A stretch of 64,000 bases of DNA. Source: Thalia democratica. Lineage: Eukaryota. The notes under the pieces are model-generated. The model worked only from the letters and a program-made list of their open reading frames with translations, was not told the origin of the DNA and did not search any database. Positions 1 through 58,675 of the stretch are shown in pieces. The DNA lies in contig OZ241829.1 in the NCBI GenBank assembly GCA_965202585.1, forward strand, positions 64,728,001-64,792,000, read 5' to 3'. Position 1 is the first letter of the stretch; every line of letters begins with the position of its first letter. A program made the position numbers and the translations under genes.

Positions 1-102
1 TCTTAATAAAATTTGAACAGTTTTTCAAATATTTGTAATCTTTTCTGCACCCCCGCTAAACACCACGCTACTGACTGCCAACTAGCGGTTTTAAACTTAC
101 AG

Positions 103-3100
103 ATAGTGGAAGACCTGCAGTCCTACTCTCCCACCCAACCCGAGGACGGGCTGCAAGGTTTCTGGCGGTGGTTTTTCGTCGGGGACACCACAGTGGTGTC
201 CGAGCTGTTCGATCAGGCCGGGTTAATAGTGCTCACCGACGCCAATTACCCCAGAAGACCGGACGATTTTCGTTAGTTTTGAATTTTGCATGCTTTTGAT
301 TTGTACTTGTAACTGTTTGTTAAGTTGAGCTTTTGTATTTGGTGACCTTTGCCTTCTGCCTCCGATGCAACTTTTGTGCGAAACTCAGTTGCAAAATATA
401 AGCGAGTGTATTGGCAAAGTTTGAATAATACAGTGAGTTTTAAAGTCACTAAACATTTATTACGTGTTAAGCTGTCGAATACGGTGACGATTTCGTAATG
501 ATTCTGGCCGAAGCGTCAACAGATGAGAAAGCGGTGACGGAGTTCACGGGAAGCGTCCGGAACGTCCATCTAGACGTGTGGATCCACTTCCAAGCCAACC
601 TCGGGTAAATTTCACACACGGGCATACCAAGTCGTTCCTCTGTTTGAATGATTCGGTTTTTGTGTTCTTTTTGGGAATTGTGAATGTTATCCTTTATTAA
701 CTTGAAGCGATCTTATTAAAATGTAAATTTTTTACCTGAAATAAAACAGACAAAAAAAAGAATAATATTCAACAAAGCTCGACTTTTTATGCCTGAATTT
801 TATTTCGTTTTCATTGTTTTATTTAAATGCAACAAGTTTATTTTGAATTCTTTTAATAAAAAAGTATTAAAATCTTATGGTCTAATGCAATAAGATTTCA
901 AAAGTAAACTAAAAAACAACTTAATCTATATATAAGCCGTACTTTGTGTTGAAGTCCGACCGAACGCCATTCATTACTTCAGATAGCTTTTTTTAACAAA
1001 AAAAATGTTTCTCTGGGGCTGCCGGATACCAATATGTTTGTTTGCTAACAGAACTATTTATTTTTCACGAGCCAAAAAGTTGCATCTTCAGGCAGAACGC
1101 AACCAAAAACGTTCTGTTGAGAACTGATGTTTTTTATAAAAGCTGTAGAATTTTCAAAAAAAACTCTGCAAATGGACGCCTTTTTTTTCTTGAAACATTA
1201 AACGCTAATTATGACGTCATAACAAAATTCAACACTTTGCAGCAATGCTTAGAGGTCAGCCCCTTCCTGCAGCTGATGACGGAGGAATAACCGAAACGGA
1301 AGTTAGTAAAAATTTTCCCGAAGTTTGGCTTTGGTTGGACTTAAACGCAGGGTACGCAAAACATTTTCTCAAATAGTTTTCAACTGTTTTTTTTTCAACT
1401 TTGATGCTTACGTGCTTGTCAAAGTTTAATTACTAAAAGTTCTGAAGCAGTTTTTAGTTACTCGTTTTTTTTGATTGAAATAAAGCTTGCTATAAGTTTA
1501 ATGAATTAGGTTCCAGTTTTTGAAAAAAAATTGAAAACTTAAATATCTTTAAAATAAAGTTTCTAAGTATAATGAAGTTTTGAAATAAACAGAAAAATTT
1601 AAGTTAAAAAACGAGTGACCTAATTTGATCAAAACAAATAATTTTTATTTTAAATGATTCTTCTACCGATAGGTTTGTTCTTTAGTTCCATAAAGACCTA
1701 AATAGTTTTTTTTATGTTAACCCACGGCGGGTAACTTCTTTTGTCCGTTGGTAATATGTGCAAAAATTTTTTTGCGAGATTATTAAACAAAAACTTATTG
1801 TTGGCTGTGTATAATTGTACTTAAAACGATGCTTTTCAACCACTAAGTTTAAACAAAGTAGTCATAAAATTTGCATCAAAGTCAGTTAATTTTTTACAGG
1901 TTTTTTTAACTAAAAAATCAGTCTTAGGCCGGATAAGTTTAGCTAGTTGGTAGGTTGCCCACCCTTGATGTAGACTAATTACTTTAGTATTTCTCAAAAA
2001 CCAAACAAGATAACGGTAAGCATGCAAACCAACAGAAAAAGCGACACGTACACCTTCAACTACAAAAACGCGCCCGCGTCTGTCACAACTTACAACATCA
2101 ACTGTTTCGCCTTGGACACTGTCAATGGGCTCGGAATTGCTGATGAGACCAGGGTTCGTTTTGATTTTTTTTTTTGCGGGAAGATTGTTGTTAAATAGTG
2201 ATAAATTTTTTTATATTAAAGTTTTTTTTCAAAAAAAAAATGTTACATTAAAAAATCACTTCATTTGTTTTGGTATAAAAATAACTTGGTTATAGTATAT
2301 ATATATATATATTGCTTGATTTAAAGTCTAGTGTTAAACAAAGAAGTAAATTACATGTTTTGTTGCTATGAATTTTGGATCAGCATTATTGTTTTTTAAT
2401 GTATTGGTATAAGTTTAAGGTAATGTAGTAAAGTAGTTGAAATAAATGTATTAATCTTTTAATTATTTTATAATTTGTAATACAGACACGACGTATTTTT
2501 TTTAAAACAAGCATATTAGTAATACATTTAAATAGTAGTATTTAATAAAAGTCATTAAAATACTTAACTAATTAATTATTTTCAGATCACATTGTTCAGA
2601 GATTTTTTTGTAACGCTGAATCTTCCATTAAACGTGAAAAGAAATGAAGTTATAATTGTTCAAGCTATCGTGTTCAACTACCTGTCTTCAAATCAATTTG
2701 TATATATGCACTTATATTATTAGCTAAGTTTATTTATCCATCTTATTTTATTTTTTTTGCTTGTCAAATGTTCATTTCATGCTCTTTTAACTATACCAAT
2801 GTTTATTGAGTATGTCAAAAGTACTTGTCACTTACAAAAATTTTTTATTGACCGAATTACTTTGAGTACTGTTCGCTGTGAGATCTGTGGTTTTCACTTT
2901 TTCATTTTACAACCCTCACTTCAGATTTTATGAGTTTTTAGCAATGTTGCCAAAAAAAAACTTAAACAAAAACGTTAAATTTCAAGCAAAAATGCAGCAG
3001 CGCGTTTCAAAAAGTCTTCGCTGAAAGGTAATTTCCCCTCGCAGGTGAGAGTGACGCTGGCGGAGTCGGAGGACTACGAGGTGGTGGAAGAGGTTGAGGG

Positions 3101-6100
3101 GGAGGGAAGCAGCAACATCAGGGAGGTGAACGTGAAAAGCCAGGAGTCGCAGGCGGCCTCCATACCCGTCAGGCTGCTCAGACACGGCGATATTGATATC
3201 GAGGTTGTGGCTGAAGGAACTTCGAAGGCGGACGCCGTCAGAAACACTCTCGTCGTGAAGGTTAGGGCTTTCGCGCTTTTAGAAATACTGTTTCAGCTAG
3301 TGTTCTACCGGATCTAATTATCCGGGTTCATAATTGGCCAGATATTGACTTATTAGATCCGGATCCGGCCGGATATCATTTTGAAAAAAAAAAAGATCCG
3401 GATCCGGTAGATCACTAGTTTCAACCTTGAAATTTTGTAGTAAATTAAAGCTTGCTTTTGTAAAGAACGGTTTGAATCCAATGAGCCATCAAGCTTTGTA
3501 TTTTTTTAATCAAAATTAGTTTCCTGCAATTTTAAGATACTTTTTGTTATCATATTAAAAAATTGTTACAATATTAAGTATGTATTTTCAGCCGGGAGGT
3601 ATCAGAGTGTGCAATACGGAATCAGTTATTTTAGACGCTGAAGATGTATCAAATCACACTTTTCAGGTTGAATTTCCCGAAACAGGGTTTGTTCCTGAAT
3701 CGAAATCGCTCCAGTTATTGATCTATGGTGAGATTTTTAATATTATTTTATTTAAATTTTTTCAATGTGTATTTAATATTTATATATTAAGATAACTTGA
3801 AAAACATAAATTGTTTTAAAAAATACACCTTTAGCTATTTTAAGTTGAAAGCACTTTATATTTTAATTCTAACTGTAACTTTAGAATTAACTAACTAACT
3901 GTAATGTAGGTGAAAACGTCATATTCAAATAGAAAGAATTGAATTGTTTTAATAAAACTTGCTCTTTGAAAAATTTATTAATTTACTGTCTGAAGAAATA
4001 GCTCACGTTTTTCTTGGACACTTATAAAAAACGCTATAACCATTTTAAACATTATTAAACAATCACAAATACGTAACACCATTATAAAAATTATTAAACA
4101 ATCAAAAATACGTAACACCGTTATGACGTCACAACAGGCGACATACTGGCAAGCACGCTGGACAACCTGGGCAACCTGATCAGGGAGCCGCGGGGGTGCG
4201 GGGAGCAGAACATGATAAACTTCGCTCCGGACGTCTTCGTGGCCTTGTACCTCCAGCACACCGATCAGCTGGACGGCGAGACTTCCGCCAAGGTGTACCA
4301 GCACATCGTCACCGGATTCCAGAACCAGCTCAAGTTTGTTGTTGTGTTTGTGAGGTTATGTGTTCGAAGCACAGTGTGGTTTTTCAAGTTTCGTGTAGAC
4401 TATTTTTGAAAACATATTTTGTTTTAGCAAAAACTTTATATAACGTAAAAAGTTAGCAGAAAGTATTTTTACTTCTGGCCCGATTAACCTAGGCTCTCTC
4501 TAGTTTATCACATTATAAATAATTTTGATCTTCCTAGTTACTAACAGTTTTGTGATCTTGCTAATAAATTTTCGCTGTATCGCTTGCTCATTACGACTAG
4601 TATCATTTACATTATTAAGTCATCCGCTCAAATGTTTTATGCCGTCATATTGCAGTTACAAACGAGACGACGGTTCTTACAGCGCGTTCGGGTCACGTGA
4701 CGAGTCAGGCTCGCTATGGTTGACCGCGTTCGTGGCCAAATGCTTCGTTTACACGTCGCAGGTCAGGAGCGAGCTGGTGCTGCAGCTGAAAGGTCACGTG
4801 ACGGACGCGTTCCGCTTCGTTGCGGCCAATCAAAACGAAGATGGCAGTTTCAATGACCCCGGCAGAGTCATTCACAAATCCATGCAGGTTGTTAGCTTCG
4901 TTTATTGGTTCGGTTTTAAACCGATTTAAATTCTTAAAATGCAACTATAAAAGTATTTTCTATGTTACAACTTTGTTTTGAAGTATATTCTGTGATATTC
5001 TTTTTTAGATTTTACTTTGTTTATGTATTATAAGTTTAAGCTATTTCAAATTTTCTCATCATAGCATTATACTGTAGAAATTTGTTAATGAACATTATCT
5101 TTGATTTTTAAGTATTTTCTTAAAATAATTTTGCTTAGATTTAACTCTGTAACTTTTTTTAAATGCTGTAGTGTTAGTTAATTGCCAATGAATAGATAAG
5201 TAAAACCCCAAAATACAGTAAGCAATTTTAAACAGGGCGGAGTCAACAGCAAATTAACACTGACAGCTTATATATTGATATCGATGACTGAAAATGAGTT
5301 TGATCGCAACATAGATGTTAGTTCATTGAGTTTTGTTAAATATGTTTACTTTTGCATTTATTTATAGTGAAAAAGAGTGTGCGTATTTAAGTAAGCTTGA
5401 GCGTTAAAGATTAGTTGTGAGTAGTCATAAAATTTGAGTTTTCTGTTCAAAAATGTGACAGTTTCTAAATTATAGTCCGCATTGTGCAAAGTTATTTTAT
5501 CACTTTTATTGTAGAAACAACTAGTTTAATTTTTAGTTAAAATATTAATACAGGAAACAGTTATAGAAAAAGCCAGGAGTTATGTGGAATCCAATTTAGA
5601 CAGTATTAGTACAGACATATATGTGTTACCATTAGTTACTTATGCGTTACATACTAGTAACAGTGATATGAAAGACCAAGCGTTTGATTTGATGAAAGAT
5701 TTTAAAATTGATGGTTAATAAAATGTTGTATTGAAAAACAATTTACGCTTTAAGTAGTTTTAATTCCTATGCTAAATTTTATTAAAAATACAATAGTTAC
5801 TTTTTGTTGGTCAAATTCGGTTTAAAATATTTTTTAAATTGTAAAAAAGCTGGTTTTATACTATTTAGGTAAAAATAAAGTATGTAATAAAATAACAGAT
5901 TGGATAAAAATACTTCTAAAAAGAAATAACGGGTGTTTTTTAAAATATTTCTGTAGTTTTTTTTCAGATAGTAGTTTTTAACTTTAAGTGTACATATTTT
6001 ATAATAAGAACTTTTGTTCTTCTATATATGCAGTACAATTTAGCATTAACTGTTTATACAGTTATTTAAAACAATAATAAAACTAAAAAACTTACTTTCA

Positions 6101-9100
6101 ATTTTAGCGCCCTTTTTATAATTCAAGATTACATAAGTTCTAAAATGTATGAATTAAGAGCTTAAACTATTAAAATGTTTTCTGTTTAACGATTGTCACT
6201 TTAGCTGACACTGTTTCTCCTAAAAGGATCTTCAGAGCTTTTTGGACAATAATAAAATAACACGAAGCACACAAATATATATAATAAAATCAAGTAATGA
6301 GAAAGTAAAACTGTTTGTGTGCTTCCTGTTATTTTATTGTTACTTAGAAAGCTCTGAAGATCCTTTTAGCAGAAACAGTGTCAGCTAAAGTGACAATCGT
6401 TGAATAGAAAATTATTTTATTAGTTTACGATTATAGAAACAAGTTCCTGAAGCTGTTTTTAAGCAAAAGATAACTAAAAAAAAATCAATATACACCAAGA
6501 CATAAAACTTTGGTGTTTTTATTTTCTTTTTAGTTTTATTTTTTCCAATAGATTCACTAGCATGTACTGGATTTTAATAATAACGATTTTAGGTTTGTTA
6601 CCATCAGCATTTGTTACGGAGTCGATTTCTTACAGGCTGCTAACACACGTGTTTAGAAATGATTTGTCAGGGGCTTTCCCTGTTTTGAGAACATTGGCAG
6701 GGATGAGAAACAGCATTGGTGGCTACTACAGCACCCAAGTTCGAAACATTTTGTTTGTTGAAATATATGCAGGTTTTTTAGCTCTTAAAATAACTACGCC
6801 TTGAAAAGTTTCAAATCTTGATGTTTAGTAAACCTGATCTGTGATGTAATTTTTGTAAAACTCTATTTTAGCAACTTTAATTTTACTAAATTTAAAATCC
6901 AAAAGATGAGATGGCTTGCATTTTATTGTGATCAGAAATTACTTATTTGTTTTTGTCTAGCTATTGTTTATGTTCGGTTTAAACTGAATACTTTTCAAAG
7001 GGATCATTAAAAACCAGGGTTTCCCGAACTCATTTTCATAATCGCACACTTGATAGACATTTAAAACTAGTTGCCTCCTATTAGATAATGACCCTTTACT
7101 TATTGATTCCTTTTTTTTCGCCCATTTCCAGTTATTGCCTCCTGATAGCAGAAATCTTCCCCGAATAGACGGTCGTTGTTGCCCACTTTGGGATACCCTG
7201 GATTGTAGATGTCAATTATTTTTTTTTTGTTTTCTGTGTATGCTTTTTACTTTAAATGCTTAAGAATAAAAATAACAGTTTTATGAAGCAAAATTTAAAT
7301 ATATATAACATGTTTTCATCTTAGCTTATAATTATTTATCATGTTAATTTTAAATTTTATTTTAAAAGTTTATATATCACAACAACTGTTGTAATGAACT
7401 ATTTTGATGGAAAACGAACTGTCAAAAGTTAATTAAGTCGAACTAACTTGGTACTTGTGTCCCAAACTTTTTGTAAAATTTTTGCATATAGAGATTTTTA
7501 TATTATGTTACTTACCAAATGGTAAATTAAAAAAAAATTATACAAACCGTACTATAAAACTTTTTTTATAGAGCGTTTAGTTTAAGCTTTTTATAACATG
7601 GAGATACCTAAGAAAATTATACTAAATTTCCACGTTTTTTTTGTTTATTAACACTTTATACTAAATCATCATTTTGACTTTATAATAACAACAACTAGCA
7701 TACATTATTTTAATCAACTAGTTGATGACTTCTAGCTTTTATCTTAAAAAATTATTATTTATGTACCAACACCAAACTAGGATACCGTTGTGGCAATACA
7801 GGCCATGTCAGCGGTTGCCGAACTAGTTTACGAAAGTGAAAAGAACTTGAACGTTTTTGCTGCACTAGATGGAACAGATGAACAAACAGCAAAAATTGAC
7901 AACACAAATTCAGTTGTTATTCGTCATCTTAAAGTTTGTCGACAATAAACGTTTTTTATGTAAACTAAATAAATTGTTGTTTTTTAGTTGTTTTTATGGT
8001 ATTGTACAGTTAAATTGGATTGCTTTTTAAAAAATGTACTTTGAATTATATTCTAATATAATCAAACAACTCAAAGTTATTTTATTTTAAATAAAAAATC
8101 ATCACAAAAGTATGAAATAAAATTTATTATGAGGAGGTTGTTAAAAATTGCAAAAACAAGTTTTTAGCTTTTGTTTAGATCAACAATAAATTAAACATAT
8201 AATCATAGAGTATTTTTAAAACATTTTTTTAACTTTACAGAAATTTTTAAATATTATTAATACGATCTTCATCTTTTTTTTGATAGTCTGAGATACAACA
8301 AATCTTTTTATTGAAAACGTTATTTCACGTGGGACACTTGTTGTTATTATCTCTATCAAAATCCATATAAAACCAATAGACCTTTAAAAATAAATTCATT
8401 ATGCAAAACTAATAAAACTATATTATTTTTTCTTAGTTTATAATTATTCATCACGTCGTTTTTTAATTGCGCAACAAAGTACACTTTAATATTTTCAAAG
8501 TTTCCCGCGCAAAACGGCGAGCTGGCAGTGAGAGTGGAAGGGACCGGCCTGATGGTGGCGCAAGTGATCCAATGTCACCACGCCGAAGACGTCGCCGCTG
8601 AGAGGCGCAAGAGATCGGTTGGAGGGGATTCCCCGTTTGCGTGCACGAACGTCGTCAAGTCGGAGCAGCGAGGCAACAGTCTCATGACGTTTTGCTGCAA
8701 GTTGGTTCTTTTTATTTTCAGGGGTTTCACAATTGAGTTTCTTGTGGTTTGCATGGGTAAAGTATTAGATAAGCAAAATTGAGAAAACTTTTTCGAAAAA
8801 CGTACATAAGACTTGTGTAATGAATGTCATTATTTTTGTTTTTGTTTGTTTTTGAACTTTATCATTTAAAAGCACAGTTTGTATGAAGCATTAATATAGT
8901 AGTTTTTACACAAAATCGTTTTAAAACTTTAACTTTTTTTAAACCACACTGTTAAGTAACTTTATAAGGAAATAGCATTTAAGATCAAAATTGTCTACTT
9001 TTGTTCACATATGCTACTTGAATAACACTGTTCCTGGAAAATAAATGCAACTGAGCAAATTTGACGTTGAAGGTTGAAATCCGGCGAGGAAGCAACTGGA

Positions 9101-10350
9101 ATGTTCATCTACGAAGTTGAACTTCCCAACGGATTCACCGTGCAAATTGATAATGAAATTGAAAATAACAAGGTGGCTAAAAAAGTCGAGCTTCACGAAA
9201 ACTCCATTGTATTTTACCACGACGAAGTAAGAATTTGTGCATGTATGTATTAGTACACAGACATGTGTGTTACACATTTTTAGTACTTGTTATTTTCAAC
9301 AGTAGTTTATACAGTGTGTACTTGTCACGTCAGTATGAACTAAAATTTTCCATTATACATAGAAATTAAATTGAATAATAGTTTGTTTAAGTATCTTTGT
9401 TTCCTAATTTGAATTCGTTTGATATTCTTCATTAAATTTTAGCGCAGTTTCTACTACATATGATAAATAAACAATCTATATTTAAATGTGTGTACAGGTG
9501 TTTTTATGGTGTTCACACATTTCAAAGTAGAACAATACTCTTTTAAGTATAAATCAAATTCTTAAAACTTTTAGACCAATCTGTTAAAAATGTATACGAA
9601 AAATATGCGCTAAAATTTAATCAAGTTTCATAAAAGCTTATTGACTTCCAAGCTTATAGTAAGTGATTATCATTCCACAGTTAACAAAAAAGGAGTTATG
9701 CTCTAATATGGAAATAATAAGAGATGAAAAAGTTACTGACATTCAACCATCAGTGATAAGGGCTTATGAATATTACAGACCTGGTTAGAAAATTTAACTA
9801 CACATAATTTACTGCAAAAACAAGTAACATGTTTTAAATCTAAGATGCTTTCCTTTCTGTTTTGCTTAGGTTATTTTATATACTTTTTAGAAAGTATACG
9901 AGGTAATAAAAAAATTACAGTCAATCTTAGTTTTGTTTAACTCTACTTTTTAATTTTTAACAGATTTGGTTCAATTTATTTAAAATTTATACACATTTAA
10001 GTTATTTTAAAAGTAGTTAATACGTATAAGGAGATTGTAAGTAATCAAAATAGTATAAAAAGTAAACACAGTTTTTGTAATTATTTACTTTCCCAATTCA
10101 ACCAGAAAGAATACATTTGAGCAATTACGAGTTGTCAGAGGAAGTTTCGAAAATGTCGGTTTGCCAGATATGCGGTCAGGACTGTGAGAAATGCGCCAAA
10201 TTGGTCGATACCGAGGAAGACAAGGGCCCGGTTGTCATTGACAACGAGATAAAAGACGAAAAGAGTTCCGCCAGTGGCGTCACAATGCAGAGACTCGTCG
10301 TCATAATCATCATAATACTGATTGTTTTGATGATGTTGATTGCACATTGA
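103..10350 (+). CDS. CD109: CD109-like thioester-containing protein, copy 1 (3' part; gene begins upstream of the window)
   Basis: Exons 103-271, alternative 472-604 or 1243-1351, 2036-2153, 2586-2699, 3045-3260, 3592-3727, 4138-4333 (GCGEQ at 4194-4208), 4656-4887 (His codon 4873-4875), 5236-5316, 5554-5713, 6593-6738, 7781-7933, 8501-8700 (RRKR 8603-8614), 9073-9226, 9681-9783, 10106-10350. Phases are consistent and no premature stop was seen in these exons. Confidence 0.9.
472..604 (+). CDS. TEP bait-region alternative exon A (copy 2: 47385-47517)
   Basis: AG/GT-bounded, enters in phase 1 and exits in phase 2; encodes (P)VEYGDDFVMILAEASTDEKAVTEFTGSVRNVHLDVWIHFQANL(G); elevated GC; identical in both copies as read. 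Confidence 0.7.
1243..1351 (+). CDS. TEP bait-region alternative exon B (copy 2: 48149-48257)
   Basis: Acceptor actttgcag, donor gtacgc; phase 1 in, phase 2 out; encodes (P)MLRGQPLPAADDGGITETEV[S/R]KNFPEVWLWLDLNA(G), carrying the TEP family VRKxFPETWLW motif. Confidence 0.8.
3298..3417. mobile_element. Small hAT-type MITE (copy 2: 50202-50321)
   Basis: TIRs tagtgttctaccggatc / gatccggtagatcacta; 8-bp TSD gtttcagc / gtttcaac (7/8 match); internal ggatcc repeats. Confidence 0.75.
6178..6411. mobile_element. Fold-back MITE with ~100-bp inverted arms (copy 2: ~53460-53695)
   Basis: aacgattgtcactttagctgacactgtttctcctaaaaggatcttcagagctt is matched by its near-perfect reverse complement at ~6350-6401. 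Confidence 0.7.
7015..7200. mobile_element. Short hAT-like MITE with imperfect TIRs (copy 2: 54296-54481)
   Basis: cagggtttcccg ... ttgggataccctg; no TSD recognisable. Confidence 0.45.
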
Positions 10351-11386
10351 AAATTTTTATTTTTTATTTTTAATATTTTTACAGTTTTTTTTTTACTTTT
10401 CTTATTTCTTTTATTTAATTTATTTAATTTTCTTATAATTAATAATTTCTGAATTATCTAATTTATTTTTATGCTAATAGATTACTATTTCAATACATAT
10501 ATTTGTTATACATGAAATTAAATTAAATACCTTTATTCATCGGTATTATTTTATTTAGATTATTGTTGTTCTCTTCTTGATAAACTATTATCTAAAAATT
10601 AAATTCTTTATTCTGAAACCTTGAATGTTTGATTTTATTCATTAACTTGAAATTATTATTAAATAACGACAAAATTTATTTGCCACTTAAAAATATAAAT
10701 TTTAACATAGATTTTCTTATCTAAATAAAAAATGTTAAATTTATTAGTTACTACTTTGCTTACTAGTGTAATAGCAACAGATATAAAAATGATACTTATT
10801 GTAGGTGGTACTTCCTAAAATTTGTTCATAATTTAAGAGTTATTTAAGAATTATATTTTGCAGCAGGGTTTGCAATTTCCTTAACTTAATAGATAAGTAC
10901 TTTCAGCTTAGTATATTAAACGTTGCTATTTATTGTTTAGTTTGTTCAATACACATTTTAATAGCAGCACTATGCTGTAAAATCCACAAATTTCATTACA
11001 AGTTGCTGTCCAAAACAATTTTAAAGGTTTATAATTTTTAGACCATTTGAACATTACTAACCCTAGCTTTTAAATCTATCAAATAATTTAATTATTAAAA
11101 CTTCAAATATATTTTGAAAATATTTTACCGAAATAAATAAAGTACTGAATACGTAATTAATAAAATACAAAAAACGAGCAGTTTTACTTAAACTTATTAA
11201 AAACGAGCATGTTTAAATGATAAGTAATGAATAGTTGAAAAACTAATAAATAAATAAATCAAAGGCTCTTCAATACTAATTATATTTATCATCAATCAAA
11301 AATGTGATGCACTTGTGAAATAACAATTACGTTTTAGAAAGGAACAGAACACACAATTGTAAAAGTAACAACTACATGCACTTTTT

Positions 11387-11696
11387 TTATGCAACATTGC
11401 AGTAGCACCCCTTGGGCACGAGAACAGTGGTGTGTTGCGACATTCCGCTGAAGTACTCCGAAGTGAATATAGGAGTCGACTTCACTTGCACGGAATCCGG
11501 CTTGCTTATGCTGAAGTTTTCCAAGTTGCACTTTGGGTTTCGGCACTTGGCTGCCTGGAAGTTTTCGTCCAAACCGTCGCATCTGACCGTGTACATGTCC
11601 CACGCTGCGAGCGCTTTTGGCTTGGAGTGGCCGGGTGTTACCACGGGTTGTCCCCTTCTTATTTGAACCTTGCACTTGTAGTTATCCAAAAAATCT
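11387..11696 (-). CDS. IL-17-like cystine-knot cytokine, terminal coding exon, copy 1
   Basis: After acceptor ttttcag: DFLDNYKCKVQIRRGQPVVTPGHSKPKALAAWDMYTVRCDGLDENFQAAKCRNPKC...STPIF...VLVPKGCYCNVA*. It shows IL-17 hallmarks: RSLSPW-like KALAAW, AxCxxxxC, SxPI and VxxGCxC. The upstream signal-peptide exon is not confidently located. Confidence 0.65.
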
Positions 11697-14172
11697 CTGA
11701 AAATTTAGAATGTTGTTTAGTTTTGATACCTAAAGCTAACAGTCCTTAAATTTATCATTTTAAACTTTAATCATAAATTCTCGTTGTTAAGAATAATTTT
11801 CAATTTTTTATTAATCTTATTTATATTTTATTAATTAATTAGCTCTATTTTTTATTAATCTAAATCAACACATATAGCATCATTAAAGTTTAAACTGTTA
11901 TTACGTTAAGGTGACATCACAGCAATATTAAGATAGTGATAGTGTAAAAAAAATATATGTTTTTTTTTATCATAACAAACAAAGGTTTTATAAAATATAA
12001 GTTTTAACAAGTCTCAAAAAGGCAAAAAACTTAAACTTTTAAAAATTTCTTTTGTTATTGAAAACAAATTTCAAAAGTTGTTACGTTTATATGTACAAAA
12101 AATTAGACTAAACACCTAACAACAATATCTTTGAAAAATGTATTAGTAACTACCTGCAAACTACTTTATATAAGTTTACAAAACATTATGAGTTTTTTCA
12201 ACATATCACGATTCAAAATATTTACATTTCAACTTAATTGTTAAAATCCCACATAATCTATTGTTATTTAATTATTAGAAAGGAAAGTTAACTTTATAAA
12301 AGGCAAACACCTTTTGTTTTAAAAAAAAAACATATCTTTATTAGTTCTATTTTATACAAAGTGAAATATCAGAAAATACTAACTATTTCAACTAAATAGT
12401 AAAAGATTTAGACACAATAACTTTTGCGTCAATAATAATAAACTGTTTGAAAGTTCAAATAGTAATGTATTAATTTTTTTCTTAGTAATAGTAATTCATT
12501 AAACTTAAAAAAAAATAACTGTGTGATGTCTGTAATTTCCGAAACAAATAATTTATATTTAATGAATACTGCTCGAATTTCGATGACTTACTATTGTTGC
12601 AGTAAGTAGTACTTTTAATCAGCTGCCATTTTTGTCAAACCAGTAGTAAAATATAAAAATAAGTTAAACAATAAAAGGATAACATATACTGTAAAGTCAA
12701 AAATATAAAAGGTTATGCTCGGAATCGAACCCGGGTCGCTCGTATATAATTCATTAGCTTTATATTTATAAATTTTTAATGAAGTGAAAATACTCAAACA
12801 ACTATTTACTAGTTAAAATTAGCTACATAATCGTAAATATAAGCAACGGTTAATTGTAGTGATTTCAATGTTTTTACTAAGAGCAAAAAAAAATGGTTAC
12901 CACTTTTAATGGAATAATGATTGTCATTTTAAAAAGTTTAAAAGCGTTGTTAAAGCTGCTACTTAAAACAAAGCTGTTAAGGGTTTACATAAAGTTATTA
13001 TCTGTTTACATAAAGTTTAAGATGTTTACATAAAGTTATTATCTGTTTAATTTCTAAAAAAAATAAAATCGTGTATTTTAATTAAATAAAGTATATCATA
13101 TAAGCTAAAATAGTTTTTTTTTTATGAATTTTACTTTTTTGTAAAAACTTTTGTTAATTTTAAAAATGTATAACTTTATACTTCACAATACTGCTAAAGT
13201 ATATATTTTGTTTTAGAAATATAACTGTTTCAACTATTAAAAGTTTACTCTAATTAAATTCAATAAAACACTTTATACAGAATCGAATACTTTTTCTACT
13301 TTTAGTTAGATTTATTTCATAACATACTTAAGTAGTTATAAGAAGTGTAACAAAAAGTACGTTTGTTCTTTTCTACAAAACTTGTGGTTTTATAGAAAAA
13401 ATACAACTTAGCTACTTATGTTATATTTTATTCAAGTTCATAACTACTCTGATAGAGAAATATCGTAAAAACGTAATCAAATTTTTTAGTTTAATGATAT
13501 TTTTAAAATTTGATATTGAAGTATTTTTATTTAGACCTTGACATATTTCTAAGTTCACACAATTTTAATACGTTTTTTTGAGAACATAGTTATAACAAAA
13601 ATTTAAATGTGTTTAAAAATAAGTTATTAAAAAACAATAAAACTAAAGTAAAACTGTTAATTTTTATGAAAATGTTTTAAGGCTGAAAGTTTTGTTTCTC
13701 AACTCAGTTTAGTAACGAAAACATTAAGCAATTACTATTGCATTTGTAATATTAATTTAAATTAAGTCTTTGAAATAAACGTGTAAAAAATACTGATGTT
13801 TTTTATTAAATAAACTATTATCTGTATTTAATGTTTTATTTAAAAATAAAAAGAGTTCTTTTGTGTCGTTGAAGTACCTGGTTTGTATAACTGCTATGAG
13901 ATTATTTGGGATTCCCCGGGTGTTTGGTAAAATGTTCAGGTAAACTAACTTGAATTAAAAACAAGTTTAAGATGTGGAAAAGGTGAGTTTTTCTACTACA
14001 TTTGAAAGTAATGTGATTGTTATCTTAAAATTTAATACAGTTATAGTATTATAATATATAATATAATTATATATATCATTTTTAAATGTTTTAATGTGAT
14101 GCATAGAATCTAAAATTTGTTTTATGTGTTTCTTAACAAAAAATTGAAATTTTTATAGATTAAGCATAATTA

Positions 14173-14475
14173 CAAAAGGGCCACTAAACCTATAATCCTG
14201 GAAAAATGTGGCAATAAAAAAAAATTGGAACAACCTGGAATTTTAAACATTTTTTACATGTTAAGTAGTGATTTGACACAAAAATTTCAAATGAACCAAA
14301 ACTTTTTGTCATAATTAAAAAAAAAACTTCATTAAAAACATATTCAAAGTAGCTTTACATTGTCTTTTCAATACTGTTATACTATTTAACACAGTTTTTA
14401 CTTTAAGCTTACTTATAAACTAAAAATAGACCTAATAACCTGGAAGAAATTTCTGAAAAACCAGTGGCCACCCTG
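14173..14475. mobile_element. Related MITE with degenerate left TIR (copy 2: 62448-62750)
   Basis: Right end gtggccaccctg; 6-bp TSD taatta on both sides; internal cctggaaa motifs similar to 42545-42928. Confidence 0.65.
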
Positions 14476-16749
14476 TAATTATTTCAAGTATTTAATCAAA
14501 AAGCCTTTTAGTGGGGAGTAAATGGTTAAAAAGGTTTTCACTATTATTTTGCAAACATAAACATAAAATTTTTTTGTAATTACCTAGGAAGATGTTGCAC
14601 CAATATCAAACCAAAATTATATTGCATTTGATGTCTTAGTTATTCAACCATAATTTTAGGCTAAAAATCAATTTTAGCATGAGCAGTAAAGGAGCCACAG
14701 GGGGGCCATGAGGCCATAATTTGAAACTTGCACTAAATATTCTTGATTTGCAGATGAAGAGAAAAAAAGGTCTTATGTGTATTTTATGGTAGTTTATGAG
14801 TAATCTTGTTGATGCGGGCCATGGCTTTTTCAATTTCTTTAAAGGGGGCCATTTGCAAAAAAGTTTGGGAAGCCCTGATCTAAACAGATACTTTTTTTAA
14901 ACAACATATATAAATTCATAGTAAGAAATAAAATTATTTATTGTAAACTAAATTAATCTTTTTTTTTTTTCAATATTGTAATCAATATAAAATATTGTAT
15001 TGATATAGCTGATTTATATTGTAAAATAAAAGCGATTAAGTGTTTAATTTTTATTAGTTTATGATAAATAAGTTTAATTCTATTTAGTTGTTATAAAATA
15101 TAATTATTAGCATAACTTGTGGTTAAAAAAGACATCAAATATAATATAATTTCAGCTTGATATTGGTGCGACATCATCTTAGGTAATTACAAACAATTTT
15201 TCTGGCTCACAAAGAGTAAATTATTCTCCAAATATTCAAAAAGTTGTATAAATTTTCTGCAAATTGTCAAAATTTAAAAAACTTTCTGCAAAATGGTTTA
15301 ATTAAAAAAAGGATGAAATAACAAAATACTGGGATTTATTTATTGAATAGTGATGGGCCAATCTTTAAATGTAAACCCAATTATTTTTGATAAAATGTAT
15401 TCATTTAAGTTTATTTAACAACAAAACTAATCAATTTTTCAGTTTAAAAAAAATATTAAGGAACATAGTAGTAAGATTAAAACAAAAGGTTAATATTATT
15501 CTAAGTTTCACTTATATAATGGCTTTAAAAAAAACAAAAACATTTGAATAAAACACTAAAAAAATATATGAACATAAAGTGCTTTTGTTTTTCAATTTTT
15601 TTACTTTAAGTTTCTTTTGTCATATTTATCAGCTATAATTTTATAAAATTAAAAAAAAATAAAAAAGTTTATGTATTTTAGATGTAGATAATGTTAACAT
15701 TTTTCTCTAAAATTAGTTGCTAGCTTATAAAAGTTACTGTATAATGTTTTTAAGTTAAAGGTAAAAGCTAAAAGAATGGTTTAAGTTAATTTTAGTTTCT
15801 TTTAGTCATGAATAACTCAAATCAAATTCATTAACAAATTTAATTTTACTAGTTTTGATTATTGTTAATATGTTTATACTGTATTAGTAATAGCCATTAT
15901 TGTAAATTTTTTATTTTATTTCCTAACTAGTTTAATCTTAGTTTTATATAAAAAAATTTTATTCACCAAATCAGTCAGTCATTAATCAAATAATTTAGTT
16001 TTGTTTAAATAACTACTACTTAGCATGATGTCACACAAATATCAAACTGAAATTATATTTTGTTCTTGGTCTATTTCTATTATAACCATAAGTTTAGTCT
16101 AAATTATACTTTGTTTTAAACAAGCTATTTAAACACATAGTAAGAATTAAATTCAATTGTTACAAACTAAAATACTTAATTGATTTTATTTTACAGTATA
16201 GTAATGTATATAAGTTATTGTATCATTTGCTTTATTTTAAAAATAAAAGCAATTAAAAATATAAGTTTTATTGGTTTATGATAAATAAGTTCTATATATG
16301 TATTTAGAAAATATAACTTTTTAGAATATAACTATGGTAAAAGAGATTATTTAAAAAAATGACAAGATTGAATATAATATAATTTTAGCTTGATATTTGT
16401 GCGACATCATGCTAGGAAATTACCCTTATTTTATCATTTATGTATAAAAATGTCATTTTTAGTTTAAAATAATGGACCAAGAATAAAATATAATTTCAGT
16501 TTGATATTGGTACAATCATACTAGTTAATTACCAATGGTTTTTGTAAATTAATTACGAATTTTAGCACTAATAAAAAAAGTTGTTTTTTTTTCAAATAAA
16601 AGTATTTTGTGTTATTTACAACTTCTAGTAAATTATAAAATATAACAGTTTACAATATAAAATATGATATTTAAATGATGTCGTTTAAACGTTTTCTAAG
16701 TGTTTTGAATTTGAAATGATATCTACATAATGTTTTATCATCTTCTTTG

Positions 16750-30285: not shown

Positions 30286-32445
30286 CAGGGTTGCCACACA
30301 CTCAGGGAACTCAGGGAACTCAGGGAATCTCAGGGAATTTTCAAACTGTAGAAAATCTCAGGGAAACTCAGGGAATCTCAGGGAAACTCAGGGAATTTTG
30401 GCATTTTTCTTTTAACTCAGGGAAACTCAGGGAAGTTTTGATTTCTTCTCTTAATTTCAGGGAAGTTTTTGAAAATCTCAGGGAAATTTTTTTCTAGAAC
30501 TAGAATGAGATTTAGTTAATCCAGTTTCAATATTTTGTTCAAAAGTAGTAATTTTTATTATTTAAGTTGTTATTTAGAATTTTTTTAGCCTTGCGGCTAG
30601 TTCTTCAATATTCTTAGTATTCCAAGCCAAGCTTAGTATTCAAAACAGCCCAAGCATTCCTTTCATGTATGATGATATACAGAAGTTAGTATACAAGTTA
30701 AGGAATATTGTTTTTACTACTTCTTTCATGGAAGCCCATTCAAATGGAAAAAAAAGCTGCTTGAACTAAATAATAAGCACTTTCAAAATAAAAGTTTTCA
30801 CAAAAAAGATGTAGAGTTAGGATGTGCTGCTTCTACTTTAATTCAAGATTTGCTAAATCAAGGTAAAGTTTCTAACATTTTGTTCAAGTCATTTCACAAT
30901 GAATGTAAACTTTTTATATTTGCTATAATAAAAAAAATTAAAACAAGAATGACTGTTGGTTTTGACTGTTTAAGAAGGGCTGCTGTTTTAAATCCGGCAT
31001 GTCTAATTGGAATGGGTAAAGACCGTTGTGTCAGAAACTTTACAAGGTTGGTCCAACAACTTGTCAGCATGAAGAAACTAAAAGCAAAAGAGGGTGATGA
31101 CAGCATTAATCAATACATTGACTTGTTAAGTTCTTCTAACACTCAAATACTTTTTGAAAATTTTCTTGAAAAAAGTCACAGTTTAGACACCTTTTATTTT
31201 GACACACTCGATATCCCAAGCAAGTATAAAGATTTAATAAGAGTCCTTGAGGCTGTTTTTGTGCTTCACAATGGCCAGGCAAGTGTTGAATGGGGCTTTA
31301 GCTTAAATAAGGAAGTAATATCAACTAATATGGGAGAGATGACAATAAGGTCCTGAAGAATGATCAAAGATCATCTATATGCAAACAGTCTAGAACCAAG
31401 CACAATTGAACTAAGTTCTGAATTGTTAAAATTTGTAAAATCTTCTAGGGCCCAATATTTGGCATATCTTGAGCGACAGTGCTTTGCTAAAAATGTTCCA
31501 AATAAAGGTGACGCTTTGAGCAAGTTAGGAGAACAAAAAAGTAAACTTACAAAGCAACTCAAATGTTTGAATGAAGACTATGACAAATATACTGCAGATG
31601 CCAACAAACAGTCTGATTTAGAAGCAATGAAAGAATTATTAGCAAGAGGGATAGCTGCTAAGGACAACGCAAATAAACTTGAAAATAAAACTAAAACTAT
31701 TGATTTAGAAATCGCATACTTAAAAAAACAGTATTAAGATTTTTTTATTAGGTAAGGTGAAATTGTTTTAAAATCAAAATTATGTTTTCAGTTATTTAAA
31801 ATAGATTGTGTATGAACATCTAAAAGACATTAAAAAATTTTTAATTTTTGATTATTTTGTATCAGTTGTTAGGTATTAAGTTGTACTTTGATATGAGATA
31901 TTTCTTTAGCTATTTCTTTAAACTTTCTTTTTGCAGGTTTTTTTACAATAATGTTAAGCTTTTAAGTTTTATTTACTGCATTCAGAACAGTTGCTAGGAA
32001 AGACATACAAGTCATATTGAAGTTATTATGTATGCATTTAAATGAGTTCTTCATGAAAAATTATTATTATAGTATAATTAAATTTTGTCAATTAAAATGT
32101 CAAACAAATTAAACTTTATTCTTTTATGTAGAAAGTTAACTAACAAGTTTACACAAAGTTGTGCAAAAATTTACTTTTTAATTTTTAATTGGTTTAAACC
32201 TTTTAAGATTGAGTTTTTGAAAACAGTTTTTTTCATAAATTTAAAGCAGAAGCATACACATACAACCTTCCTTTTATTATTAAAGAAGAAAAATGAGAAT
32301 GAGGTATTAATAATTTGTGTTAGAAGGGAATTTTTTTTTTTAAGATTTGAAAAATACTCAGGGAAACTCAGGGAAATTTAAGGTTACTCAGGGAAATTTT
32401 TGGTCACTCAGGGAAGATTTTTTGGCTCAAAGAGTGGCAACCCTG
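30286..32445 (+). mobile_element. hAT-like DNA transposon, internally deleted, with C-terminal transposase remnant
   Basis: 12-bp TIRs cagggttgccac / gtggcaaccctg; 6-bp flanking duplication tatatt; many subterminal ctcagggaa motifs. ORFs 30850-31356 and 31360-31737 are in one frame separated by a single TGA and contain VLHNGQASVEWGFS, resembling the hAT dimerisation-domain motif. Confidence 0.8.
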
Positions 32446-33280
32446 TATATTATAACTTTTACTAGCAACTTAAAAAGGACTTGGTCATTTGAAACCCTAG
32501 GTAGATTAAAAACTTCTACAATTCTTTTTGTGCAAAAAAAAAAACGAGTGGCATCTTTTAAAATTTAAGACGAACTTTCTATGAGAAATAAATAGTCATT
32601 CACATGGAGAAAATTAGAAAATTTTGACTCTCTTGAGGTAGCCTTTAAAGTAATTTTTGATAAAAAAAAAGACCTTTCGTCTTTCGACGAAAAGTCTTTA
32701 GAAAAAAAATAGGGAAAAAATGAAAAAAAAAATGGCGCAAAAAAGCCCCCGACGAGCCGCCGCGGAAGCATACACATACAACCTTCCTTTTATTATTAAA
32801 GAAGAAAAATGAGAATGAGGTATTAATAATTTGTGTTAGAAGAGAATTTTTTTTTTTAAGATTTGAAAAATACTCAGGGAAACTCAGGGAAATTTAAGGT
32901 TACTCAGGGAAATTTTTGGTCACTCAGGGAAGATTTTTTGGCTCAAAGAGTGGCAACCCTGTATATTATAACTTTTACTAGCAACTTAAAAAGGACTTGG
33001 TCATTTGAAACCCTAGGTAGATTAAAAACTTCTACAATTGTTTTTGTGCAAAAAAAAAAACGAGTGGCATCTTTTAAAATTTAAGACGAACTTTCTATAA
33101 GAAATAAATAGTCATTCACATGGAGAAAATTAGAAAATTTTGACTCTCTTGAGGTAGCCTTTAAAGTAATTTTTGATAAAAAAAAAGACCTTTCGTCTTT
33201 CGACGAAAAGTCTTTAGAAAAAAAATAGGGAAAAAATGAAAAAAAAAATGGCGCAAAAAAGCCCCCGACGAGCCGCCGCG
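32249..33280 (+). repeat. 516-bp tandem duplication containing the hAT right end and half of the palindrome
   Basis: 32249-32764 is repeated at 32765-33280; a second right TIR ends at 32961. Confidence 0.9.
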
Positions 33281-33334
33281 GCGGCTCGTCGGGGGCTTTT
33301 TTGCGCCATTTTTTTTTTCATTTTTTCCCTATTT
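33223..33334. repeat. Perfect 112-bp palindrome with no spacer
   Basis: Base-by-base complementarity around an axis at 33278/33279; GC-rich core gcccccgacgagccgccgcggcggctcgtcgggggc. Confidence 0.95.
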
Positions 33335-35062
33335 CTCTACCAACCGTTCCTTCAACTTCACAATTTTTTTCTCAATCCACAAAATTTCGAAAAGGCAGCC
33401 CTCCCGTTGACTTTTATTTGTTTTTTCGAAGCTCTTGCTTCCCTTTCAAAACATTTCGCTTCTACTCACCTCTGACTTTTAAAGCGACTATGAGACTGAG
33501 CCGCTTATTACATGTTACAATTTGAGTGCTTCGCCTTCGCATTTTCTGTCGTACCCGGCCGAAGCTTCACCTCTAGAAATGCTTTAGTTAATATCACTCA
33601 AACGTACTTTTAACTGGGCTGAATCATGTCAGAGCTCGTTCATATTCTGCTATGCCTTCTGAGAGAGCGGCTTCTTTGCTCAACGGCTTGCTTAGGACGG
33701 CACGTGCCTTGCTCTCGCTTTACCTTCCCTTGGTGCTTATTTAATCAGGTCTGCTATACGACCTTTAATCGCCTAGCTGCGGTCTTTCGACTCCAGCTCG
33801 AGTCGACGGCCACGTCGACTCAAGCTATATGCCTGCAAAAACACTAACACACAACCCGCCTTCACCACGCCTACCCGCTTAGACGTCTAGGGATTTATTC
33901 ATTATAGCTTTACATTGTAAAATCCCTAAGCTGACTAGGTCGTCAGCTCGCTTTCTGGCACACTACAAGTGCTTCTCTTAATAGTGTAACATTAAGCATA
34001 CGCGTATGATGCCGAAATGTTCGTGTTGAAAAATTTGGCTACCCCAAGAGAGTCAAACTTTTTCTTTCTTTCATAAAATTACTTGTTTACAGTATCACTT
34101 TACTTGTATGTGATGCTCTTTATATGATCATGTTTACTAACTACACTATACACATCGATAACGACACTAAGAGGTACGCATTTGCGTAAAGTACGCACTT
34201 ACATTTATAATGAGTTAGTCTTTAAAGTATAGATGCGAAAGTTTTTGCTTTTTTCAAAATAATGTACAACTATATATTATCTATACTTTATAGCCAAATA
34301 CAATTTTATTTTAACTTAAACAGCTATGACGTTTAAGTTGTAACAAGTATGGTTCATTTGCATTGCTAAAGGTTAAATAACATATAATGTAACACACTTG
34401 TTTTAACCAAAAAACCGTTCACTGTTGCAAGGAGTGGAGTATTAAATTCATGGTTTTTACTAAATAAATTTCCTTTACATAAACACCATTTATTGTTCTA
34501 TCTATACAGTTGTTGTGCATCTATTTCTAATTCAACTGAAACTTTTTTTTATTAATTTTTACAGAAATAAACAGCCTATTAGTTTCTACTAAATGTAAGT
34601 AACAAAAGTTAAGTAAAATCACAATATGACAGATCATGTTTAATAGATAAATATATTTAGTAGTTGTCCTTTTTACATAAATATTTTAGTATTTTTTATA
34701 TAATGAACGTAAAATTTCTTTGTTAAGTTCAAGGTTGACAAGAGTTATTTAAATAATTTAGTAGTTGTATTTTTAAGGCAGTGAAACAAAAAACAAACAC
34801 TGTTACCTATATGATGTGTAATATAGTAAGATTGTACATTTCACTTTTTAAATTTAATACCAACTTAGATACACATAGCTACGAATAATTAAATGTTGTT
34901 AAAACTGTACTTTACAAACTAAATAAAAGTCTTGTTTAATTTATACCACCTTAAGCTTTTACTTAATACTGTTATATTTCAAGTATCTCAGTTCCTGTAA
35001 AATTGCTTGTTCTGTATTTTATATTTGCGAAAAAATATTTAAATACACTAATTAACTTACAG

Positions 35063-47000: not shown

Positions 47001-50000
47001 GTTATAAACTTACAGATAGTGGAAGACCTGCAGTCCTACTCTCCCACCCAACCCGAGGACGGGCTGCAAGGTTTCTGGCGGTGGTTTTTCGTCGGGGACA
47101 CCACAGTGGTGTCCGAGCTGTTCGATCAGGCCGGGTTAATAGTGCTCACCGACGCCAATTACCCCAGAAGACCGGACGATTTTCGTTAGTTTTGAATTTT
47201 GCATGCTTTTGATTTGTACTTGTAACTGTTTGTTAAGTTGAGCTTTTGTATTTGGTGACCTTTGCCTTCTGCCTCCGATGCAACTTTTGTGCGAAACTCA
47301 GTTGCAAAATATAAGCGAGTGTATTGGCAAAGTTTGAATAATACAGTGAGTTTTAAAGTCACTAAACATTTATTACGTGTTAAGCTGTCGAATACGGTGA
47401 CGATTTCGTAATGATTCTGGCCGAAGCGTCAACAGATGAGAAAGCGGTGACGGAGTTCACGGGAAGCGTCCGGAACGTCCATCTAGACGTGTGGATCCAC
47501 TTCCAAGCCAACCTCGGGTAAATTTCACACACGGGCATACCAAGTCGTTCCTCTGTTTGAATGATTTGGTTTTTGTGTTCTTTTTGGGACATGTTATCCT
47601 TTATTAACTTGAAGCGATCTTATTAAAATGTAATTTTTTTACCTGAAATAAAACAGACAAAAAAAGAATAATATTCAACAAAGCTCGACTTTTTATGCCT
47701 GAATTTTATTTCGTTTTCATTGTTTTATTTAAATGCAACAAGTTTATTTTGAATTCTTTTAATAAAAAAGTATTAAAATCTTATGGTCTAATGCAATAAG
47801 ATTTCAAAAGTAAACTAAAAAACAACTTAATCTATATATATGCTGTACTTTGTGTTGAAGTCCGACCGAACGCCATTCATTACTTCAGATAGCTTTTTTT
47901 AACAAAAAAAATGTTTCTCTGGGGCTGCCGGATACCAATATGTTTGTTTGCTAACAGAACTATTTATTTTTCACGAGCCAAAAAGTTGCATCTTCAGGCA
48001 GAACGCAACCAAAAACGTTCTGTTGAGAACTGATGTTTTTTATAAAAGCTGTAGAATTTTCAAAAAAAACTCTGCAAATGGACGCCTTTTTTTTCTTGAA
48101 ACATTAAACGCTAATTATGACGTCATAACAAAATTCAACACTTTGCAGCAATGCTTAGAGGTCAGCCCCTTCCTGCAGCTGATGACGGAGGAATAACCGA
48201 AACGGAAGTTCGTAAAAATTTTCCCGAAGTTTGGCTTTGGTTGGACTTAAACGCAGGGTACGCAAAACATTTTCTCAAATAGTTTTCAACTGTTTTTTTT
48301 TCAACTTTGATGCTTACGTGCTTGTCAAAGTTTAATTACTAAAAGTTCTGAAGCAGTTTTTAGTTACTCGTTTTTTTTGATTGAAATAAAGCTTGCTATA
48401 AGTTTAATGTATTAGGTTCCAGTTTTTGAAAAAAAATTGAAAACTTAAATATCTTTAAAATAAAGTTTCTAAGTATAATGAAGTTTTGAAATAAACAGAA
48501 ACATTTAAGTTAAAAAACGAGTGACCTAATTTGATCAAAACAAATAATTTTTATTTTAAATGATTCTTCTACCGATAGGTTTGTTCTTTAGTTCCATAAA
48601 GACCTAAATAGTTTTTTTTATGTTAACCCACGGCGGGTAACTTCTTTTGTCCGTTGGTAATATGTGCAAAAATTTTTTTGCGAGATTATTAAACAAAAAC
48701 TTATTGTTGGCTGTGTATAATTGTACTTAAAACGATGCTTTTCAACCACTAACTTTAAACAAAGTAGTCATAAAATTTGCATCAAAGTCAGTTAATTTTT
48801 TACAGGTTTTTTTAACTAAAAAATCAGTCTTAGGCCGGATAAGTTTAGCTAGTTGGTAGGTTGCCCACCCTTGATGTAGACTAATTACTTTAGTATTTCT
48901 CAAAAACCAAACAAGATAACGGTAAGCATGCAAACCAACAGAAAAAGCGACACGTACACGTTCAACTACAAAAACGCGCCCGCGTCTGTCACAACTTACA
49001 ACATCAACTGTTTCGCCTTGGACACTGTCAATGGGCTCGGAATTGCTGATGAGACCAGGGTTCGTTTTGATTTTTTTTTTTGCGGGAAGATTGTTGTTAA
49101 ATAGTGATAAGTTTTTTTATATTAAAGTTTTTTTTCAAAAAAAAATGTTACATTAAAAATCACTTCATTTGTTTTGGTATAAAAATAACTTGGGTATAAT
49201 ATATATATATATATATATTGCTTGATTTAAAGTCTAGTGTTAAACAAAGAAGTAAATTACATGTTTTGTTGCTATGAATTTTGGATCAGCATTATTGTTT
49301 TTTAATGTATTGGTATAAGTTTAAGGTAATGTAGTAAAGTAGTTGAAATAAATGTATTAATCTTTTAATTATTTTATAATTTGTAATACAGACACGACGT
49401 ATTTTTTTTTAAACAAGCATATTAGTAATACATTTAAATAGTAGTATTTAATAAAAGTCATTAAAATACTTAACTAATTAATTATTTTCAGATCACATTG
49501 TTCAGAGATTTTTTTGTAACGCTGAATCTTCCATTAAACGTGAAAAGAAATGAAGTTATAATTGTTCAAGCTATCGTGTTCAACTACCTGTCTTCAAATC
49601 AATTTGTAATTATGCACTTATAAGCAGCTAAGTTTATTTATCCATCTTATTTAATTTTTTTTGCTTGTCAAATGTTCATTTCATGCTCTTTTAACTATAC
49701 CAATGTTTATTGAGTATGTCAAAAGTACTTGTCACTTACAAAAATTTTTTATTGACCGAATTACTTTGAGTTCTGTTCGCTGTGAGATCTGTGGTTTTCA
49801 CTTTTTCATTTTACAACCCTCACTTCAGATTTTATGAGTTTTTAGCAGTGTTGCCAAAAAAAAACTTAAACAAAAACGTTAAATTTCAAGCAAAAATGCA
49901 GCAGCGCGTTTCAAAAAGTCTTCGCTGAAAGGTAATTTCCCCTCGCAGGTGAGAGTGACGCTGGCGGAGTCGGAGGACTACGAGGTGGTGGAAGAGGTTG

Positions 50001-57642: not shown

Positions 57643-58675
57643 AAATTTATTATTAACTTTCTTAAGATTTCTTAAGTTTGTTTTTTACTTTTTTTATTGC
57701 TTTTATTTAATTTACTGTGTTTCTTTAGTTTTAGTTCACTGTGCATCATATTAGTTGTTCTTTTTATACTAATAGATTTCTATTTCAATGCATATATTTG
57801 TTATAAACGAAATCAAATTAAATACCTTTAACCATCGGTTTATTTTATTTAGATTATTGTTGTTCTCTTCTTGATAAACTATTATCTAAAAATTAAATTG
57901 TTTATTTTGAAACCTTGAATATTTGATTTCATTCATTAACTTGAAATTATTATTAAATAACGACAAAATTTATTTGCAACTTAAAAATATAAATTTTAAC
58001 ATATATTTTCTTATCTAAATAAAAAAAGTTAAATTTATTAGTTACTACTTTGCTTACTAGTGTAGTAGCAATAGATATAAAAATGATACTTATTGTAGGT
58101 GGTACTTCCTAAAATTTGTTCATAATTTAAGAGTTATTTAAGAATTATATTTTGCAGCAGGGTTTGCAATTTCCTTAACTTAATAGATAAAAAGTACTTT
58201 CAGCTTAGTATATTAAACGTTGCTATTTATTGTTCAGTTTTTCCAAAACACATTTTAATAGCAACACTATGCTATAAAATTCACAATTTTCATTACAAGA
58301 TGCTGTACGAAATAGTTTTAAAGGTTTATAATTTTTAAACCATTATTACTAACCCTAGCTTTAAAATCTATTAAATAATTTAATTATTAAAACCTCAAAA
58401 ATATTTTAAAGATATTTCTACCGAAATAAATAAAATATTAAATGCGTAATTAATAAAATACAAAAAAACGAGCAATATTGCTTATATTTATTAAAAACGT
58501 GCATATTTAAAGGAAATCTAAAGGATTATTGAATAACTAATATATAAATAAATCAAGGATCTTCAATACTAATTATATTTGTTATCAATCAAAAATTAGA
58601 TACATTTCTTAAAACAAAGTTTTAGAAAGGAATAGAACACAATATTGTAAAATTAAAAACTACATGCACTTTTTT

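Follow-up and report, generated by a model that had tools for sequence, protein, structure and literature searches.

An expressed, motif-divergent exon and a candidate alternative bait exon in a CD109-like thioester protein gene of the tunicate Thalia democratica

Introduction

Alternative exons encoding the bait of thioester proteins (TEPs) and alpha-2-macroglobulins (A2M) give invertebrates one of their few routes to a broader specificity of an innate immune effector. Does a TEP gene of the tunicate Thalia democratica use this route? In this gene, two short exons, hereafter A and B, occupy one position between two constitutive exons. An earlier note, made from the sequence alone, had proposed that they are homologous, that mRNAs contain either one or the other, and that the two resulting isoforms differ in their bait. 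We analysed a window of 64,000 nucleotides (contig OZ241829.1, positions 64,728,001 to 64,792,000 of the forward strand), which is AT-rich eukaryotic DNA containing 0 N; positions given below are those of the window unless stated otherwise.

Mutually exclusive bait exons are described (PMC7016707) for Chlamys CfTEP (6 exons), Biomphalaria BgTEP2 (12 exons) and Drosophila Tep2, so that the diversification of the Drosophila Tep2 bait by alternative exons, which the earlier note had mentioned, is published. The bait regions of BgCD109 and BgA2M are also alternatively spliced (PMC7016707), and bait splice variants are known for shrimp A2M-2 and tick A2M (PMC7016707, PMC2685406).

Results

The locus belongs to a CD109-like thioester protein gene

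Translated exons of the window contain the thioester motif GCGEQNM, located in a stop-free stretch at 4116..4331 on the plus strand that matches PF07678 (TED) with E=3e-15; the same domain scored E=3e-15 and 1e-17 on two exons. Pfam searches of the exon translations also returned PF07703, PF00207 and PF07677 above their cut-offs, while PF01835 (MG2) reached 29.4 bits on one exon alone, under its cut-off of 32.8. Along the two gene copies held by the window (copy 2, then copy 1; see below), the domains follow the expected order of MG2, A2M_BRD, A2M, TED_complement and A2M_recep. The best PDB matches of the TED exons and of the thioester exon were CD109, A2ML1 and A2M, and the closest named proteins were two "CD109 antigen-like" proteins of the ascidian Styela clava, with identities to the closest named tunicate proteins of about 25-55% per aligned exon. 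Read off the sequence, the last coding exon (10105..10350, plus strand) ends in ...SSASGVTMQR followed by a hydrophobic tail of 19-20 residues and a stop, a C-terminus that looks like a GPI signal. The earlier reading of the locus as the bait region of an A2M/TEP protein, with GCGEQ and a hydrophobic, GPI-like tail, is supported.

A mitochondrial HSP70 encoded by the same genome shows 81-87% identity to those of Phallusia, Clavelina, Ciona, Styela and Botryllus, all ranking ahead of non-tunicates, in keeping with a tunicate host. Among TARA ocean metagenome contigs, we found exons 79-80% identical to the locus, and a related pelagic species is represented in TARA sample SAMEA2657061. A search with the E1 protein (E1 being the exon upstream of A) returned same-species contigs and one TARA contig of 79% identity, which stops 29 nt past E1, short of A and B. 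A scan of metagenomes with E1 gave a single match, a spurious contig of 67% GC, and a search with the exon A protein gave 0 candidates. The minus strand carries a 67-aa open frame over exon A (window 461-670), which extends to 98 aa in L022, an environmental contig of the same species, and which is called a "gene" in an ENA metagenome annotation. This antisense frame is spurious, a product of the high GC content of the exon, and it masks the true exon in protein databases built on open reading frames.

Exons A and B each bridge E1 to E3 in frame

All the exons described here lie on the plus strand. E1 (103..271, 169 nt; acceptor CAG, donor GTTAGT) is constitutive, encodes the end of the first MG6 half (...AGLIVLTDANYPRRPDDF) and leaves in phase 1. 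Exon A (472..604, 133 nt; acceptor AAG, donor GTAAAT) encodes VRNVHLDVWIHFQANLG, that is, in translation, an acidic/hydrophobic bait followed by a diverged form of the segment discussed below. Exon B (1243..1351, 109 nt; acceptor CAG, donor GTACGC) encodes its canonical form, V[S/R]KNFPEVWLWLDLNAG. E3 (2036..2153, 118 nt; acceptor CAG, donor GTTCGT) is constitutive and encodes the rest of MG6, and the next constitutive exon, E4 (2586..2693, 3' end approximate), encodes the start of MG7 (ITLFRDFFVTLNLPLNVKRNE...; PF00207, E=6e-9). E3 and the exon following it align to positions 21-47 and 51-85 of the Pfam A2M profile, so that A and B encode the last part of the bait together with the initial strand of the second MG6 half, a segment known as BR-C (Nt-alpha' in C3). 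Taken together with the domain content, these translations identify the locus as the predicted bait and BR-C segment of a CD109-like, A2M-family thioester protein.

The lengths of E1, A, B and E3 are all 1 mod 3, and A and B both enter in phase 1 and exit in phase 2. Consequently, inclusion of both A and B through the acceptor at 1243, or skipping of both, loses the frame, as translation confirmed: E1-A-E3 and E1-B-E3 are open and free of stops, E1-A-B-E3 reads ...NLGNA* and terminates three codons into B, and E1-E3 loses the frame. Re-reading of the sequence agreed with the coordinates, splice dinucleotides, phases and lengths first assigned to A and B, and likewise with the claims that either exon alone bridges E1 to E3 and that joining both via 1243 is frame-incompatible. 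The minor acceptor noted before is also present: TAG|A at 1250-1253 (ending at 1252) would permit A to be joined in frame to a 99-nt B' (1253-1351).

All splice sites are GT-AG, and U12-type sites are absent. A has a weaker acceptor (AAG) than B (CAG). Steric hindrance is excluded as a mechanism of exclusivity, since an intron of 638 nt separates A from B. A candidate docking/selector RNA pairing of 275-288 with 1223-1236, suggested by a repeat search, is unsupported, since it does not exceed background and other windows pair more strongly by duplex energy.

Exon A is spliced into mRNA at the predicted junctions

Four public runs hold the locus, of which three are genomic and one, X4, is transcript-derived. 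X4 is small (47 Mb of Logan contigs) and bears the same organism label as the genomic runs X2 and X3. One spliced X4 contig (2264 nt, depth 12.7) crosses the junctions 271>472, 603/604>2035/2036 and 2152/3>2585/6, all with GT..AG introns, and its upstream overhang matches the exon before E1, which is spliced to E1 and whose 3' end lies at 46576 on the copy-2 numbering. A second X4 contig joins 3260>3592. The contig containing A carries the allele 554A, found in the fourth genomic copy and in L022. The junctions 271>472 and 604>2036, two of those that the earlier note had listed for checking in RNA, show that exon A is real and used in that sample. An mRNA containing A only therefore exists, which removes the reservation that A might never enter transcripts.

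In this run, the depth of the Logan contigs over 1171-1404, which includes exon B, was zero; as such contigs drop minor variants, this does not prove that B transcripts are absent. The proposal of two isoforms by exon choice thus stands for its A half, spliced as predicted, while no RNA containing B was seen in X4. The use of B and true mutual exclusivity are not shown by a single observed isoform, that of A. X4 further contains low-depth unspliced pieces at 2695-3056 and 1637-1982, which point to retained introns, to pre-mRNA or to slight DNA carry-over into the library.

The same contig bears on whether A might be joined to B' through the acceptor ending at 1252 to give a tandemly doubled BR-C segment. 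TAG|A at 1250-1253 permits this with the frame kept, but the contig runs from A straight to E3, the CAG acceptor ten bases upstream at 1243 is stronger, and a doubled MG6 strand is without precedent among 41 aligned homologues. We consider such a product highly improbable.

Near-identical gene copies, and a possible exon replacement

A repeat of window 1-15727 lies at 46914-64000, with 97-99% identity that extends to the introns. In this repeat, on the plus strand, E1 lies at 47016..47184, exon A, identical to that of copy 1, at 47385..47517, exon B, with Arg in place of the Ser of copy 1, at 48149..48257, and E3 at 48942..49059. The whole assembly (801 Mb) contains four gene copies within 225 kb of contig C5, at 64.656, 64.728, 64.775 and 64.880 Mb, spaced 47-104 kb apart. 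This arrangement and the near-identity of the repeats suggest that the TEP gene lies within a very recent tandem amplification. Exons A and B are intact with their splice sites in all four assembled copies and in L022. That the pair persists in copy 2, as the earlier note observed, is correct; however, introns are as similar as exons (97-99%), so this persistence carries no evolutionary weight, and copy 2 was discarded as evidence of conservation.

Several features were recorded in and around the copies. Near-perfect tandem repeats lie between or inside them at 32246-33281 and 43693-44599, with units of ~517 bp (two copies) and ~302 bp (repeated three times). L022 diverges upstream of position 80, and a second environmental contig, L023 (933 nt), has at its positions 1-217, ~175 nt upstream of the E1 flank, sequence that matches window 35014-35230. 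The divergence of L022 and L023 is probably a structural variant or a mobile-element insertion in the preceding intron. At window 1305, exon B of copy 1 has AGT (Ser) at the conserved BR-C arginine of the family; this codon is CGT (Arg) in the other three copies, in L022 and in runs X2 and X3.

We then measured constraint across five sequences (the four copies and L022), taking the introns as reference (61/1431 variable sites, 4.3%). E1 had no variable site in 169 (P=0.0006 against the intron rate). Exon A had 3/133, two of them non-synonymous (P=0.18), and exon B 2/109, one of them non-synonymous (P=0.15), both on few differences.

These data are relevant to a reading in which A has replaced B, so that A is now constitutive and B is retired but undecayed, leaving one isoform and no regulated choice. 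X4 contains A only, at a depth of 12.7 that is similar to the 15.5 of a constitutive contig further downstream, with zero on B; constraint on B is not significant; and the conserved Arg is Ser in B of copy 1. B also has a GC3 of 0.34, compared to 0.67-0.71 in E1, A and E3, but equally low values occur in other constitutive exons (E4, 0.36). Low GC3 was dropped as a sign of decay of B, since constitutive exons span 0.20-0.88 and the measure is uninformative. Against replacement, B in 5/5 sequences still has its open frame, the consensus acceptor CAG, the donor GT and the family motif in near-perfect form, the Logan contigs lose minor variants, and the bypass of the stronger B acceptor in favor of the weak AAG of A looks regulated. 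Exon replacement is therefore possible, though we regard it as unlikely.

Exon B keeps the BR-C motif and exon A has lost it

In cryo-EM structures of A2ML1, the BR-C segment is threaded through a channel, and once the bait is cut it withdraws and docks between MG6 and MG7 using the conserved Arg730 and Phe733 of an R-x-x-F-P-E-T-W element (PMC9156758). Exon B conforms to this element and exon A does not: B encodes [R/S]-K-N-FPEVWLW and thus keeps the near-invariant R-x-x-FPE(T/V)W-L-W segment, while A encodes R-N-V-HLDVW-I-H, which retains the Arg and has His for the Phe. We built a family profile from 41 distinct homologue segments picked by the pattern F[PS][ED]xW; the presence of this pattern in 41/41 follows from that selection. 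The B isoform scored 17.8 bits against the 41-sequence profile, and the A isoform was not reported and received no score, in agreement with the earlier description of the A motif as strongly diverged (HLDVW for FPETW). Exon B also matches S. clava CD109-like protein (p=0.0002). A likeness between DDFVMILAEAS of exon A and DDMMIMEAAMD of the S. clava bait was set aside as not significant (p=0.21).

Bait exons of related genes

A candidate cluster of the same kind was found in L014 (ENA ERZ25067590 ctg29289), a TEP gene most like S. clava CD109-like XP_039256178. Four candidate bait exons stand there in tandem at 901-1072, 3493-3685, 3935-4103 and 4993-5161 (172, 193, 169 and 169 nt), all with pyrimidine-rich AG acceptors, GTA donors, passage from phase 1 to phase 2 and lengths of 1 mod 3. 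They differ in the N-terminal half, and their ends read (R/W)(S/C)YFPET(W/C)(L/F)W. Like A and B of Thalia, they lie upstream of an E3-like exon and share the same phases and length class. Unlike A, three of the four copies have YFPETWLW, and the remaining one, x2, has FPETCFW. L014:901-5161 is likely a mutually exclusive exon cluster that has escaped annotation. The same contig carries another TEP gene, L015, which has one bait exon, with FPETLLW. In S. clava, two CD109-like genes (L009 and L019) have a single FPETW exon each, their annotated isoforms differ at the termini only, and a motif scan found no hidden second bait exon in either.

Ciona intestinalis has a GPI-anchored alpha-2-macroglobulin (Hammond et al. 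2005, as cited in PMC12939704). This protein, like human CD109 (PDB 8s3o, 9fx2), resembles the Thalia one as a chordate TEP of the A2M branch, and its GPI-type C-terminus compares with the GPI-like one of Thalia. Our literature search found no bait-exon cluster described for Ciona A2M or human CD109, and no tunicate bait-exon case.

Among protostomes, a close parallel in layout is BgTEP2 of the mollusc Biomphalaria glabrata, in which tandem alternative exons also encode a highly variable bait-like region, with products that have a variable N-terminus and a conserved C-terminus. BgTEP2 has up to 12 exons with isoforms known from transcriptomes, whereas Thalia has two exons, one of them seen in RNA, and exon A lacks the conserved C-terminal motif. 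BgCD109 has a predicted GPI anchor (PMC7016707), to be compared with the GPI-like C-terminus in Thalia. Drosophila Tep2 (five isoforms) and Chlamys farreri CfTEP (six exons) also diversify one exon position (as cited in PMC7016707); these are secreted protostome iTEPs for which pathogen- and sex-specific expression of isoforms was shown by experiment, whereas the Thalia locus is known from sequence and one run. In the mosquito Malaya genurostris, at least 10 of the TEP1-like RefSeq isoforms X1-X11 (cluster P0091) differ at the position equivalent to A/B. They diverge directly after ...MTNANEPP and continue through V-R-K-x-FPESW-x-W; the boundary is homologous to that of E1 with A/B. All of these insect variants, at least 10 in number, have F[PS]E[SV]W, and none has diverged as far as exon A of Thalia.

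A common origin of A and B is partly supported

The C-terminal 17-residue blocks of A and B share 5/17 identities, following the pattern x-R-x-x-x-x-[DE]-V-W-[IL]-x-[FL]-x-x-N-x-G. In fixed register this similarity exceeds 99.98% of shuffles (p=0.0002), and a free local protein alignment gave p=0.02. At the DNA level, we detected no similarity between A and B, either in the exons or in their 60-nt flanks. The homology assumed in the earlier note is hence partly supported, by one 17-residue block at p=0.0002 and by nothing in the DNA. If A and B are duplicates, their duplication would be old.

Alternatively, A could derive from intronic or foreign sequence that was exonised and came to occupy this position, its likeness to B being convergence on an MG6 strand. 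The lack of DNA similarity in exons and flanks, the modest p=0.02 of the free alignment, the missing family-profile match and the non-significant likeness to the S. clava bait (p=0.21) are all consistent with such an origin. However, A and B agree in phases, length class, Pro start and Gly end, their aligned pattern reaches p=0.0002 over 17 residues, and the same exon is tandemly duplicated in a relative (L014). Exonisation consequently seems to us highly improbable.

Discussion

We lean, with some reserve, towards A and B being two alternative cassettes for one segment of a putatively GPI-type, CD109-like tunicate TEP, with A chosen in the sample of X4 and B elsewhere. In favour are the frame arithmetic, the spliced X4 contig, the intact exons and splice sites in four copies and L022, the similarity of the C-terminal blocks (p=0.0002), the family-profile match of B but not A, the four tandem exons of L014, the Malaya isoforms and the published bait-exon cases. 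By frame arithmetic, full protein comes only from mRNAs that include a single cassette, and the frameshifted forms with both or neither would be cleared by nonsense-mediated decay. A is the chosen cassette in X4, the sole transcript data, and B, as the ancestral canonical version, would most likely be used in other tissues, stages or challenges. The two products would offer different baits to proteases and may therefore differ in protease susceptibility; they would also differ in the Arg-x-x-Phe element for docking between MG6 and MG7 after cleavage, where A has the Arg but His for Phe. A change in protease or pathogen specificity between the isoforms, as the earlier note supposed, may follow from these differences. 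Several observations speak against two cassettes: no B transcript was seen in X4, the one small transcript-derived run, whose depth over B is zero, constraint on A and B is not significant (P=0.18 and 0.15), A and B lack DNA similarity, two S. clava genes have a single bait exon, and B of copy 1 has Ser for Arg.

A bolder and rather doubtful extension is that the choice between a canonical and a deeply diverged cassette works as a functional switch, in which the main isoform, without FPETW and with the ratchet Phe changed to His, would be activated differently or without proteolysis. If true, the choice of A or B would go beyond bait diversification.

Bait-exon diversification itself is already known in fly, mosquito and mollusc, and the noteworthy points here are the tunicate host and the lost motif: the cassette seen expressed, A, lacks the signature motif of the family. 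Together, the Thalia locus and the candidate cluster of L014 would take bait-exon diversification beyond arthropods and molluscs to the tunicates, the vertebrates' sister group. The locus is moreover a natural experiment, in which one gene probably makes versions both with and without the conserved motif considered to drive the activation movement across the A2M family.
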